Positions 4,459-62,889 of a stretch of DNA of 64,000 nt are shown here, in pieces. Numbering within the stretch: the first letter of the stretch is position 1; each line of letters begins with the position of its first letter. Origin of the DNA: Octopus sinensis (taxonomy: Eukaryota); NCBI RefSeq assembly GCF_006345805.1, contig NC_043004.1:82460001-82524000 (forward strand), read 5' to 3'. A program made the translations under genes and the position numbers. A model generated the notes under the pieces. It was not told the origin of the DNA and did not search any database. It saw only the letters and a list, made by a program, of their open reading frames with translations.

Positions 4459-5127
4459 CTTGTTATACAGTATTATGCCTTCATGGAAATACTTGAGCAT
4501 TGCAAATGTGCTGCCAAGCAAGAAGCATACCATAAAAGCTATCTCCTCTATCTCCAGTAGATCATTTAGTGTTCCATATATCGTACAAAAAATAGCGCAT
4601 GGGACATAGAATATGACTGTTGATAACTGGAGCTGAAATTTTTCACTGACCAGTTCGAGTAGTTTACAAAGTATTCGATGTTTTTGTGATATCTCGGCTA
4701 TCAAATGACTTTTAGCTTTGCATTTATTTATAGAATTTCCCTGTTTTATATCATGCATACGTTTCGGAAAGCCTTCATTAAGTTTATCGAACTCCTGTTT
4801 CACGATCTCCATAAAAAAAACAGGGACTATATACTCGTTATAACGCATTAAAACAAGTGATAAAGTCAGCATATAAGTTGTTACTAGAATTGGTAGGAAA
4901 AGGTAGTCAGAGCTTTTCGCTGGGAAAGGAAAGATCTGTAGAAAATCCGTATATGTAATATAAAACGGTAAAATGATGTAATAGATAAATTTTGAAATGC
5001 AATTTACCATGAGAAGAACCAGACGCTTTCGTTTATGCTTATTCCACAGCTTAGAATAAATTTTCAGGCGATCAGCTGGTAATTGGTAATTAATAAAACA
5101 GCTGGTAATTGGTAATAAATAAACAGG
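4459..5127 (-). pseudogene. GRL copy A, 5'-deleted (lacks the N-terminal ~115 codons, TM1-TM2)
   Basis: Homologous to copy C from FINYQLPADRLK to IILYNK|GTAAGT. At ~5127 the sequence jumps directly into the internal part of the upstream SINE (about 610 bp missing relative to C). Confidence 0.8.
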
Positions 5128-5280
5128 TCTGTCTTTACTTTCTGAGTTCACATACCGCCAACTTTGACATTGCCTTTCATCCGTTTGATGTTGATAAATT
5201 AAGTACCACTTGCGTGCTGTGGTCGATCTAATCGACTAGCCCACCCCACCTAAAACCTCGGGGTCTGAGTCTAGAGTAGA
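5128..5280 (+). mobile_element. Partial SINE (3' part of the family upstream of each minus-strand GRL)
   Basis: Matches 19741-19892. Confidence 0.7.
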
Positions 5281-6014
5281 AAAGAAAATTTCGAGAAAAA
5301 GCGTATCACAATATATTAAACAATGTACTGAATGATGTTAAGTGTTGGTAAATTTCATACTTCGTTAATAGAGCAATCCCAAATACAATAACATGTATAA
5401 ACATATATATTATATATATATATATATATATATATATATATATATATATATATATATCATATATATGTATGTATTATGTGTGTCTGTATGTGCGTGCGAC
5501 TGTGTAAAGTATTACTTGCGATTGGTTGATTTCAATAGGCGTTGTCTCTTCCTTGTCTCATCGTTGTTATGAGACAAACCTGATTTGAGTAAATGCGTAA
5601 TAGATTGTTATTGATCGATTCTTAATTAACTGATTGGTTTGTATTGGACGGCAATAATACTTCCGTTGTACATTATAACGATCAACATTGATACGCTTGC
5701 TGCATGGAAATACGCACACACACATATGTATATATATATTATATATATATATATATATAATATGGTTATCAGTAATAATATAGGGTGAAATTAATTAATT
5801 TGGAATAATCATTAATTTCACCAAGTAGATTTCGGCATGTAAAAGCTCCATTCGAGGAAAGTTAAAGTAATACTAAGTAATTAAGGGTTAGCAACGATTT
5901 GCCTCACCACGAACGAATTTAGAAATAGCAGTCAAAGAGTTATAGCTATTCTTTCTACTTTTAGAAATATATATATATCAATATATATAAATATATATAT
6001 ATATATATATATAT

Positions 6015-58383: not shown

Positions 58384-61300
58384 TTGTATGTTACAAAAAT
58401 ATGACATTAATTAAAAAACTACAAATAAATAGATAAGAAGTTATAAACTCACACAAAAGTGAATAAAAATTTAAAGTAAAAATAAAAGAACCTATATGTG
58501 ACTGTGTGATAATTAACTTGCTTAGCAACAACATGGTCCCTGTTTCAGTCCCACTGCGGTGCACCTTGGGCAAGTGTCTTCTAGTATAGCCTCGGGACGA
58601 CCAAAGCCTAGAGAGTGGATTTGGTGGACGGAAACTGAAAGAAGCCTGTCTTACATATATATATATATGAATATATATATATAGGCTTCTATCATTCTCC
58701 GTGATAGATCGCTAGTTACTACACATCTTATAGTTTCTCTCGTTGATTCTTTCTGTTTTCCTTTTCGTGGAAGGGCGTAGGCTCGAAACGTTAAAGACTT
58801 TTTCACTTCCAGTGCGTTATACTAATACATCTGTTTATGGTCTACACCACCTGTCTTCGTCTTTTGCTTTTTTGTGTGAATTCTCCCTATATATATATGC
58901 ATATATATATATATATATATATATATATATATATATATATATATATATATATATATATATATATATATATATATATATACTTGATCATCGGTATATTATT
59001 GCTATTTTAATTTTAATTTTCTATTATATGTAATTTTCTAGAGGGTGTAATTTAATTGTTCATTTTGAATTGATAACATGTGTCTTTTTCTAATTTATAT
59101 ATATATATATATATATATATATATATATATATATATATTTCAACAATAGCTGCTATTTCTAATGAGTTCAGTATGTGGCAAAGTAATTTATTTTACTAAA
59201 CCCTTTTATATAATGTAATATATATATATATATATATATATATATATATATATATATATATATATGTTTATATATATATTACATTTTGTGAAATTTGATT
59301 TAGTATTTCTAAACAGAATTTTTCCCTGTAAGTTAGAAATTATATTCCCCCAAATAATTATTATACACACACACACACACACACACACACACACACACAC
59401 ACACACACACACACACACACACACACACACACAGACACACACACACACATTATATATATATATATTTTTATATATATTTATTTATATGTGAGTATTTGTA
59501 TTCTATGTTTGTACCCCCTCCTCAAACATCACTTGACAATTGATGCTGGTGTGTTTACGTCCCCGTAAATTAGCGGTTCGGCAAAAGATACCGATATAAT
59601 AATTACTTGGATTACTAATAATAAATCCTGTGGTAGGTTTGTTAGACTAAATGTGAGGCTCCAGAATGGCCGCAGTCAAATGACTGAGACAAATGAAAGA
59701 ATAAAAGAATATGTTTCAGTCCTATCGTCTAGTTGATGGGAAATCTAAAGCATTTTGTTTCATGCGAAGGAAGTTCCCACATTCTATCTGTATGATGGTA
59801 ATGGTAGGATTTCAACATCGCAATTTTTAAACCAATAAAAATCTATAATCCCCTCACAAGAATAATCTCCTACCCAGCTTACATGAATCCTAAAGATAGG
59901 TTTATTTTCCATAGGCGACCTCTAGTTATCCTTGAACATATATATATATATATAATCCTTTTATAATTAATTACTAAATTTTAGGGTAGCAAAAAATTCT
60001 AGAAAAATTCTCCGCTACCTGCGGTCCAGTGAGAAAGAAAAAATAGTCGATAGACTATGTAATATAGACTATATATATTATATATATATATATATATATA
60101 TATATATATATATATATATATATATATATATATAAATATATATATATATATATATGTAATATAAATAAAATAAAAATATATGCATATATATATACATATA
60201 TGTACATACCTACATAGATATGTATATATACATGCATATATGGCTACAGGGCATCAAAAAAACGTTGAACACGATGAGAAACGAAAGCAAAAACAAAAAC
60301 ATAGAAACGAACTTTTTTTCGAACAACGAAAAACAGACAGAGAAACAAGACATGGATCATGAATATTTCCCTTCTATAGTTGTCCCTGTTTCAACTACTC
60401 CACGGGTCGAAGGCAAGGACCAGACGTGACTTCGTTGAAACAGTACTTCCCGTAGGCAAATTAAATAAAATTTGGGATTTTTTGCGGAGGGTGAAAATGG
60501 AAACAAGAACAGGACAGTGAGAAAAAACAGTAAAAACAAACGGCGTGGGCTGTTAAACAAAGACGATAGAAAGATTATTATGAACGCTAGGAAGACGAGC
60601 TTATGAAGGAGACAGTATAAGTTCGTTTAATCTTTACGAACGTTGAGGGTAGAAAGTTAGATTCTCTTTTGTCACGTGTCGGCAGCGAGAGAGTTGAAAA
60701 GGAGGAGTGAGAGAGAGAGGGAATGATGAAGAGGAGAGGAGAAGAATAGGGAAGGGTGGGAGAGAAAACCAGAAAGGACGAAGAACAAGAGAGAGAGAGA
60801 GAGAGTTAGACAGAGAAGTGATAGTAAAATAGAAGCGTGCGCTTCGTAATTATTAAGATAAAACTTACTTGGAAAAGGGTGCGTGGCGTTCGATCATATA
60901 ATAATATAAATAATATATAAATATATTCGTATATACATACATATATGTACATACCTTCATATATATGTATATATACGTGCATATATGGGTAGAGAACATA
61001 AAAAAACGTTGAACACAATGAGAAACGAAAACAAAAACAAAAACATAGAAATGAACTTTTATATACTTGTTTCAAACAGATATATATATGTATATATATA
61101 TAAAGTTAATCCAAACAAGAAAACACACAAAAAAACACAGCAACGCGAGGACGTGGAACAAAGAAAGTATTATTGGACGCTCAGGAAAGAAAGGAAGAAG
61201 GAGGGTTTAACGTTTCGAGCTGAGCTCTTCGTCGGAAACAAAGGAAAGATCCCGAGAAGGGAAGACAAAGGAAAAAAAGTGCTGGCGGTGCTCACGAGGT

Positions 61301-61937
61301 CACATTTGTATATATATATATATATACAAATACAAAATCATACACACACACATTTTAAGAGAAATATCCGTATGTGAGAAAAATCTTATATAAAAGACAA
61401 ATCTTCTTTTACGTGGTAGACAAAGGAACTGCTCAATGCACATCTATTTGGAACAAACGCTTCATACAAAGCAAGCTAATGGGGAAGAATATAATATCGA
61501 TATTGTAATCTATATACTTGCGAAAATCAAATGAACATCAGAGTAATATCACACATAAAGTCATGTATGTATGTATATATATATATGTTTGTGTGTGTAT
61601 ATACGCACCGATATTGTTGATTGAATATATAAATCATCTAGATTTATGTCTTAAGAAGCTTAGTGAGCAATATTCAAGTTGATATATATTTTAAATCCCT
61701 AGAAACAGATTTGAAATAATCCCTGTATACAAACAAACCGGGAGACATAATATACCAGGTTTATCCGATATCTATAGGTCTTCAATTTTTCTCCTATATT
61801 AAGCTGAGAGTGTTGCAAAGCCCTGTGCGTTACGAAAGAACTGGAAATAAAGTTTAACAAAAACAAGGCCTCTGTGGTTTATGTCAACGTGTTTAACTCT
61901 CTATAGAACTTGTGAGAAATATATTATTACACAAAGT

Positions 61938-62889
61938 ATGGAACTAAAAGAAACACGATTCTACAAAATATTACAATTTTATGGAAAAATTAATATTTGT
62001 AAGATATCACTTATGAACATATCACTGAAATCTCTCAAATGTAAAAATATCTGTATCTCTGCCTTTTACATCCTGTGTCGTGTATATATGATTACAAACC
62101 CCATTATATCTATGTATGCTATAATAGGATTGCTTCATAAATCTCATGAAAGATTTGTATTTATTTATTTATGCACTATTTTTTCAGTGTTTGCTCTCAC
62201 TCTACTGTCTGATCAAATTCTTCCGAAAATTTAAAGACGAAGAAATACTCGGAATATTTACTGAACTCAAAATTGAAAAAGCCGATGAAAAATTCTATAA
62301 CATTAACTTAATATTTTCTTTTATATCACTTTCTATAATTGTATTGCTGCCGCCAATTTTGCTCGCTCTCATGAGAATCGTTCTCACTATTCTCATGAAC
62401 TCTGTTTCGAATTCCTCAACAAAATATTTAAGCAGCATCGAAACTCGTGAATTTAATACTTCAGTAATTTGCACTTTATTTGATTGCATATTTTTTACGT
62501 GCTTACTCTATGATTGGTATATCAATATGGCAATTGGAACTGCACTGCAGTATGAGTTTAATAAAGTAGTGAGCGAGGCTGAGAAATACCTAAAAGAAAA
62601 GCATTCGAATACTTCGTATTTCTTTAAGAAATATAAAGAGATTCCAGAAATATGTAACTCACATAATACTCTGAGTAAAACATTGAATTTAGTAAATGAA
62701 TCATTTCAACTGACTTTGGGACTTATCGTACTCTTTAGTATTACTGGATGTTGTGTTGCTACGTATATAATTATAAATATTTCATACAAAATTATACTCA
62801 CTTATTAGGTTTCCATTATGTTTGTGGCTTCGTTGAACATGATTCTTCTGATCACAACGATGAAGATTGGAGTTCGTTTAAACAAATCG
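61938..62889 (+). pseudogene. GRL copy H, pseudogenised paralog of G
   Basis: MELKETRFYK start. A frameshift in an (ATTT)n run at ~62157-62173 is repaired by removing 4 bp, which restores collinearity with G. In-frame TAG at 62806-62808. Ends AAC AAA TCG|GTAAGT. Confidence 0.8.

Follow-up and report, generated by a model that had tools for sequence, protein, structure and literature searches.

Two gustatory-receptor-like loci in Octopus sinensis, probably built from alternative first exons with shared terminal exons

Here we examine a 64,000-nucleotide stretch of the Octopus sinensis genome (C8:82,460,001-82,524,000 in an assembly of 2.72 Gb; hereafter 'the window'), which carries eight mutually homologous long exons of a gustatory-receptor-like (GRL) family within the seven-transmembrane (7TM) ion-channel superfamily. 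The window is probably the head-to-head junction of two multi-isoform GRL loci, in which the long exons would serve as alternative first exons and be joined to constant exons shared along each locus. An earlier reading of the same DNA, made from its letters without database searches (the sequence-only reading), had described a cluster of eight GRL sequences; the homologues are indeed there, but we read them as alternative first exons of two loci and not as eight self-contained genes.

Eight long exons and their family

The eight exons, labelled A to H, were located through stop-to-stop open reading frames (ORFs) and tblastn searches with exons C and G as queries, and lie where the sequence-only reading had placed them (Table 1), in a genome that it had rightly taken for cephalopod. 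Their similarity to each other ranges from E = 1e-63 to E = 1e-226. The count of eight stands for homologues but not for intact copies: C, D, E, F and G are intact, and A, B and H are defective. According to the map of duplication units, the 5' part of exon A has been deleted, and lacking residues 1-118 it has no ATG, first transmembrane helix (TM1) or TM2, while exon B aligns in tblastn as three separate, overlapping pieces with stops between them. The outer limits of the cluster, 4459 and 62889, are the splice-donor ends of A and H.

Two types can be distinguished in the window, the C-type (A to E) and the G-type (F to H), two deeply diverged types that share ~17% identity when 25 long exons are aligned; within the G-type, F and G are only 46% identical. 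The motifs named in the sequence-only reading hold across these 25 exons, the invariant residues being, in the numbering of exon G, E207, F208 and K210 (EF.K) after TM4, I236 and H243 before TM5, Y277 (TYG) in TM5, and G312 (G..L) at the end of TM6. Its phase-0 intron is equally consistent, with a phase-0 donor, GTAAGT or GTGAGT, at the same place in 24 of the 24 long exons checked. Gene callers read this donor as 'VS', and the public protein predictions for the long exons all continue into the intron. At the other end, the long exons each have a conserved initiator methionine, preceded in several (C, E and G among them) by an in-frame stop 2-11 codons upstream, two codons before the ATG in C and four in G.

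DNA before the ATG is also conserved, in G (window ~51720-51780) and in the copies L001, L004, L005 and L019. In some copies (such as P0003 and P0005) it forms an N-terminal extension of ~20 residues with an earlier methionine, which in G is broken by stops. Within the ~200 nt upstream that the comparison covered for most copies, this similarity looks like what is left of an N-terminus once longer, or like a 5' untranslated region under conservation, and does not look like a defined promoter element.

On the combined weight of profile and fold comparisons, the octopus sequences are almost certainly members of the GRL / 7TM ion-channel family. The curated cut-off of the Pfam family 7tm_7 (PF08395), 26.6 bits, is exceeded by two spliced models that include the exons for the seventh helix (TM7): P0031, a C-type protein of O. 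bimaculoides (LOC128248504) that is 78-80% identical to exons C, D and E, scores 28.4 bits (E = 1.3e-6), and P0010, a G-type protein of O. sinensis (XP_036361419.1), scores 27.4 bits (E = 2.6e-6). P0031 also matches Trehalose_recp and 7tm_6, more weakly than 7tm_7, which is the sole meaningful Pfam family for exons and spliced models. Pfam scans of both gave no match to G-protein-coupled receptors (GPCRs) or neurotransmitter-gated channels.

The predicted fold points in the same direction. For exon G, an AlphaFold2 model based on the 25-sequence alignment and ending before TM7 (pLDDT 80.5, pTM 0.81) shows six transmembrane-length helices, matching the six hydrophobic segments recognized earlier; the last three are very long (residues 172-223, 233-280 and 288-317). 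When compared by Foldseek with the Protein Data Bank (PDB), its best 13 matches are all insect odorant receptors (ORs), gustatory receptors (GRs) or the co-receptor Orco, at probabilities of 0.96-1.00, with query-normalised TM-scores of 0.67 for AgamOR28, 0.66 for MhOR5, 0.58 for Orco and 0.50 for Gr43a. The next matches are ABC transporters at a TM-score of ~0.2, and the same search gave no similarity to the GPCR fold (NTSR1, 0.13). Neither GPCRs nor an unrelated membrane family emerged from the profile and structure searches, and the placement in the GR/OR superfamily proposed by the sequence-only reading is upheld. On this placement, the octopus proteins would be expected to show the inverted topology of the family, with the N-terminus inside, and to form tetrameric ligand-gated cation channels.

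Some observations nevertheless speak against this assignment. The long exons alone stay below the Pfam cut-off, with a 7tm_7 match in 2 of 25 (22 bits for exon G, across profile positions 7-293 of 370), so that the HMMER comparison suggested in the sequence-only reading came out in favour for the spliced models and not for the exons by themselves. A profile of the 25 exons, searched against PDB sequences, finds Gr43a at a non-significant E = 1, among ferritin noise, and a nicotinic acetylcholine receptor (nAChR) chain at E = 4.2. Moreover, the TM7 motif deviates from TYhhhhhQF in both types: the third constant exon of the G-type encodes TYILVVIQT and the C-type of O. bimaculoides has SYAILAYQT, both keeping T/S-Y and Q and replacing the final F by T. 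An AlphaFold2 model of P0031, which contains TM7, was discarded (pLDDT 51, pTM 0.33).

Terminal exons of the two runs

TM7 is the pore-lining helix of the family, and three phase-0 introns in the C-terminal region are ancestral for GRs and GRLs. In the 3-4.5 kb downstream of 24 long exons, no private TM7 exon was found save for the copy that adjoins a constant set, and the pattern [ST][YF]x5[QEN][FYL] gave no credible TM7 candidate downstream of the long exons. In cross-paralog tblastn and in blastp with downstream ORFs, microsatellite-encoded peptides dominated the output, and the conservation that F, G and H show ~400-750 nt further downstream is repeat-like and noncoding.

The C-terminal exons became visible through spliced models. 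P0010 and P0015 contain different long exons and have near-identical C-termini ending in ...GSFITYILVVIQTK(S/P)L, the GR TM7 motif TYhhhhhQ. Among 20 sampled loci, these G-type C-terminal exons are present once, in L014, where the first two constant exons, c1 (L014:4444-4512, 69 nt) and c2 (L014:5420-5509, 90 nt), have AG/GT borders in phase 0. Since the long exon also ends in phase 0, the lengths and flanks of c1 and c2 put all three introns in phase 0. In both constant types, the c1 boundary aligns at the same position, and c1 is 69 nt long and in phase 0. Two RefSeq models of LOC118764608 combine such exons over a distance: isoform X3 (P0015) carries the long exon at C8:82,766,319 and isoform X2 (P0033) the one at C8:82,755,165, and as both are joined to identical c1-c3, with the c1 and c2 of L014, the models skip intervening variable exons. 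A further model, P0032 (isoform X4 of LOC118764607), has its acceptor inside c1 (...RLHAA/DIKPEVVAK, the slash marking the splice junction), removing 14 residues, a sign that alternative acceptors may serve the first constant exon.

On the minus strand, a tblastn search with the C-terminus of P0031 returns a 27-residue alignment at 85% identity, covering 23 of 23 c1 residues and four intronic ones. This c1 is bordered by a ttttAG acceptor (173-172) and a GTAAGT donor (102-97), in phase 0 on both sides, and its 23 residues are all identical between O. sinensis and O. bimaculoides, compared with the 78-80% of the variable exons. TM7 of the C-type is encoded outside the window, by c2 and c3. The same search gave no second c1-like match in the window, and with a single c1 downstream of all of A to E, exons E, D, C, pseudo-B and pseudo-A would share one TM7-encoding block. 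In order of transcription the locus reads E, D, C, pseudo-B, pseudo-A, c1, c2, c3, over ~32 kb. From the sequence, a shared-exon architecture is very probable for A to E.

These results bear directly on the alternative that the window holds eight separate GRL genes in tandem, with small TM7 exons of their own close to every one. Chemoreceptor families are usually organised as tandem arrays of complete genes, and short, divergent terminal exons are easily missed by BLAST. However, the constant peptides detect sets down to 47% identity on C8, and a cross-type set at 33%, yet match nothing behind 24 long exons apart from one that adjoins a set. As the window has just one c1, and intervening long exons are skipped in RefSeq isoform models, we consider independent genes highly improbable.

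The plus-strand run, of which F, G and H are the first three members, comprises 15 intact and ~20 defective long exons over ~281 kb; one defective G-type exon within it is inverted (Table 1). The only constant set detectable for this run lies at C8:82,785,443-82,788,356, ~263 kb past the end of the window, and a genome search with the G-type constant peptide, reporting matches to 47% identity, found none between 82.46 and 82.785 Mb. In a tree of the sampled exons, F, G and eight other exons, all from 82.54-82.74 Mb, form one clade (support 99/99), which fits the duplication of variable exons without their constant exons. For F to H, we regard shared terminal exons as reasonably likely. Two points tell against this reading: the nearest constant set is 263-280 kb from F and G, and tblastn could overlook a private TM7 exon that is very short or divergent. 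Against shared terminal exons at either locus, the RefSeq isoforms are computational models, N-terminally truncated, none of which includes an exon of the window.

The distance also underlies a different view, in which the minus-strand locus is as described above while F, G and H are stranded, being spliced to no TM7 exon and representing relics or sources of six-helix products only. Consistent with this, ~20 of the ~35 exons of the run are already defective, H included, and F or G appears in no model, the O. vulgaris protein P0001 being a chimera. Yet F and G retain frames of 321 and 318 codons, an ATG and a perfect donor despite their low mutual identity, and such long open frames in sequence of 32-36% GC argue for long-term constraint. 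Nine further intact exons, belonging to one well-supported clade, lie between F/G and the constant set, and protocadherin and UGT1A clusters splice across comparable distances. We regard stranding of F, G and H as an unlikely account.

For the two loci with shared terminal exons, we infer a mechanism by analogy with insect Gr39a/Gr28b and with the protocadherin and UGT1A clusters, and this inference extends to the splicing of the window's own exons (above all of F and G, across more than 260 kb), promoter choice, channel function and a chemosensory role. Each long exon would be a variable first coding exon, providing its own start codon, TM1-TM6 and a strong phase-0 donor; in insect relatives, these six helices hold the ligand pocket. 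TM7, with the motif (T/S)YhhhhhQ, would come from three short constant exons (69 nt, 90 nt and a terminal one, all in phase 0), one set being common to a whole run of variable exons. Transcription would begin at one variable exon, whose cap-proximal donor would be spliced to the first acceptor, at c1, so that variable exons further downstream would leave as intron. Through promoter choice and cap-proximal splicing to c1, each locus could yield a panel of subunits with differing sensing halves and an identical pore/assembly helix.

Table 1. Long exons, constant exons and other features. Plain numbers are window positions; a slash marks the exon border at the donor.
Feature	Position	Strand	Description
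Exon A	4459-5103	-	Pseudo-exon; residues 119-333 remain, 94% identical to C over them (tblastn)
Exon B	10864-11861	-	Pseudo-exon; homology full-length; frameshifts and stops
Exon C	18481-19479	-	Intact, 333 codons, TM1-6, own ATG; end ...LYNK/GTAAGT
Exon D	24713-25708	-	Intact, 332 codons; 95% identical to C
Exon E	28402-29400	-	Intact, 333 codons; 86% identical to C; 5'-most of the C-type locus
Exon F	44803-45765	+	Intact, G-type, 321 codons; 5'-most of the plus-strand cluster; end ...LHKS/GTAAGT
Exon G	51781-52734	+	Intact, 318 codons; end ...LNKS/GTAAGT
Exon H	61938-62889	+	Pseudo-exon; frameshift near residue 72-89, one TAG; donor GTAAGT kept
Constant exon c1 (C-type)	103-171	-	69 nt, 23 codons, SHGILQEIYKSNIGDITPEAKME; sole constant exon within the window
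Constant exon c2 (C-type)	C8:82,458,439-82,458,555	-	1.4 kb past the left edge
Constant exon c3 (C-type)	C8:82,456,997-82,457,152	-	2.8 kb past the left edge
G-type constant sets	C8: 82.785, 82.806, 82.831, 82.863 Mb	+	Constant-peptide search
G-type constant sets	C8: 83.178, 83.108, 82.890 Mb, possibly 83.068 Mb	-	Constant-peptide search
Inverted G-type long exon	C8:82,623,135-82,624,108	-	Defective; within the plus-strand run
C-type exon L020	C8:82,875,733-82,876,743	-	Intact; 60% identical to C; GTAAGT donor
7tm_7 profile match	C4133:137-508	+	Unplaced scaffold; 30.5 bits, positions 23-142
Palindromic element	17471-17882; ~9865-10271; ~23705-24114		~410 bp; ~85% identical to own reverse complement
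GIY-YIG-type (Penelope-like) ORFs	33894-35311; 56552-57643	-	Retroelement; ORF 33894-34724 has a weak Pfam GIY-YIG match, E = 0.002
Retroelement fragments	6770-7324; 14404-15102; 21541-22179	-	In the A-E duplication units
LINE-type endonuclease domain	53752-54540	+	Pfam Exo_endo_phos_2, E = 5.4e-10
Repeat-like ORF	40157-40654	+	Counterpart of part of P0001; no Pfam match
Microsatellite/low-complexity tracts	43259-43929; 15096-15599; 22322-22816; 49382-51099

The array on C8 and its candidate role

The window is one part of a larger array on C8, for which our census was read from search tables rather than base-level annotation, making its figures approximate and its counts lower bounds. In total, the array contains ~46 intact and at least 35 defective long exons of all types, with ~9 constant sets, within ~1.07 Mb. 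The genome-wide search proposed in the sequence-only reading gives 76 long-exon matches to exon G, ~26 of them intact, and the G-type constant peptide finds ~8 sets in the genome, all on C8. On the minus strand, 11 intact exons of a third type (P0017-like) occupy 82.896-83.049 Mb, upstream of a constant-like exon at 82.890 Mb, and a few divergent long-exon copies extend to 83.53 Mb. The intact C-type exons are C, D and E and one further copy at 82.876 Mb. No constant exons were detectable in the 5 kb downstream of this last copy (L020), which is itself situated downstream of that constant-like exon; it may be an orphan variable exon. Outside C8, the unplaced scaffold C4133 holds the sole direct genome match of the Pfam 7tm_7 profile, perhaps a more canonical GRL that may lie apart from the array.

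The family had been called lineage-specific and expanding, and both descriptions are supported. Among 1.84 billion proteins, only 17 representatives were found; the four with a source name are all Octopus, most others are Logan contigs, and phmmer found no relatives outside this Octopus-like set. P0002, from run SRR11869391, is an unspliced 1.46-kb contig. Within the window, A to E sit in tandem units of 6-7 kb whose noncoding parts are 92-97.5% identical; the unit of exon B (6.9 kb) is 97.5% identical in DNA to that of exon C. Exons C, D and E differ by 0.03-0.07 synonymous substitutions per site (dS), and they are 86-95% alike, compared with the 78-80% shared with the O. bimaculoides exon, which suggests that they were duplicated, or underwent gene conversion, once the species had separated. 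Their dN/dS ratios of 0.65-1.2 come from few substitutions, with relaxed and diversifying selection inseparable; given these low counts, and flanks as similar as the exons, the intactness of C, D and E is no evidence of selection.

As to what such proteins might do, the balance tilts slightly towards a chemosensory function. GRL proteins could instead act outside external chemoreception, in development, internal sensing or the detection of light or temperature, which we hold to be possible though the less favoured view. The roles of non-insect GRLs are largely undefined, and the sequence is silent on tissue and ligand. In a cnidarian, a GRL has a part in body patterning, and in Drosophila, isoforms of Gr28b respond to light and heat. 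For Gr28b, such sensing is also mentioned in the literature (PMC6175461). On the other side, a large and fast-evolving array with many pseudo-exons and recent duplications is the typical signature of environmental chemoreceptors, and highly variable sensing halves set against conserved pore exons are likewise typical of chemoreceptor repertoires. In addition, class-A GPCRs have undergone reduced lineage-specific expansion in cephalopods, leaving room for other families (PMC11886862). More speculatively, and with considerable doubt, the array might constitute a second large ionotropic chemoreceptor system of protocadherin-like design, with ~9 loci and ~46 intact variable exons, in which one promoter would be chosen per sensory cell and its TM1-6 half spliced to a cluster-wide TM7.

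The closest counterparts of the proposed layout are found in insects, where a GR locus can have several long first exons, all coding for six transmembrane helices and spliced to three shared short exons for TM7 (PMC2204066). In Blattella Gr60a-m the number of such isoforms reaches 13, and the layout is widespread among insect GRs (PMC6175461). Like the octopus loci, Gr39a, Gr28b, Gr23a and Gr60a-m belong to the 7tm_7 family, have long 5' exons with their own ATG, TM1-6 and donor, three shared 3' TM7 exons and interspersed pseudo-exons, and gain isoforms by exon duplication (PMC2204066, PMC6175461). The octopus loci differ in belonging to Mollusca and in scale, with ~35 variable exons in one run, whereas Gr39a has 4-5 and the largest locus of the cockroach 13; moreover, the octopus long exon alone misses the Pfam cut-off, its TM7 motif ends in QT and not QF, and splicing of the window's exons is a prediction, the RefSeq models joining two long exons outside the window. 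GRLs of molluscs, annelids, cnidarians and echinoderms share the 7TM ion-channel fold, a TYhhhhhQ-type TM7 and phase-0 C-terminal introns (PMC7746228, PMC11730519). In surveyed annelids, however, they are few, with two per spionid species and none in three siboglinids (PMC11730519), in contrast to the dozens of intact long exons on a single octopus chromosome. Protocadherin and UGT1A clusters also place tandem variable first exons upstream of one constant set encoding a common C-terminal part, but their protein families are unrelated and the likeness is one of locus logic, an analogy only.

Within octopus, reviews give only chemotactile receptors and GPCRs as chemoreceptors (PMC11526382, PMC12635824). 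Both the chemotactile receptors, Cys-loop proteins derived from nAChRs, and the chemosensory GPCRs of cephalopods are, like the GRLs, lineage-specific expansions of putative ionotropic or sensory receptors (PMC11526382), but neither is related to them in sequence or fold, as the nAChR and NTSR1 comparisons above indicate. Lineage-specific expansion of GPCRs is reduced in cephalopods (PMC11886862). In the literature searched, which left subscription papers out of scope, we found no description of cephalopod GRLs, and the array seems to be undescribed. An insect-type 7TM ion-channel array, apparently lineage-specific, would add a third candidate receptor system in octopus. It would also mean that alternative long first exons with shared TM7 exons exist outside arthropods, on a far larger scale; the layout would then be either old in the family or repeatedly invited by a gene structure of one long exon plus three short ones. 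If the protocadherin-like proposal is true, no animal would be known to have a larger alternative-first-exon chemoreceptor locus than the run that F and G open, and dozens of ligand specificities would share a few pore/assembly modules. With one constant set serving a whole cluster, a single knock-out would remove all of its isoforms, providing a convenient genetic handle.

Annotation and neighbouring features

Current gene models represent the family poorly. Those of RefSeq are fragmentary (141-231 aa), and in the O. vulgaris genome the family is misannotated: the 'hypothetical predicted protein' P0001 is a chimera of a repeat-like ORF, corresponding to window positions 40157-40654, and internal pieces of exon G, followed by a tail resembling the N-terminal stretch of another G-type exon. 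Repertoire counts and expression studies based on such fragmentary or chimeric annotations would miss the family.

Repeats and mobile elements are interspersed with the long exons (Table 1). The low-complexity tracts consist of triplet runs (poly-L/T/N/V) and TG/CA-rich 'YVCM' repeats, which give rise to spurious long ORFs on both strands and overwhelm comparisons of introns at the protein level. Between G and H, the intron-like interval contains an endonuclease domain from a LINE-type retrotransposon. Every C-type duplication unit has a palindromic (inverted-repeat) element ~600 bp downstream of its long exon. Penelope-like retroelement ORFs of the GIY-YIG type are present at two places, and the retroelement fragments, found in all of the A-E duplication units, have in common the peptide GQTGRRLADRFAEHLRDI with a Pro/Ser-rich tail behind it.

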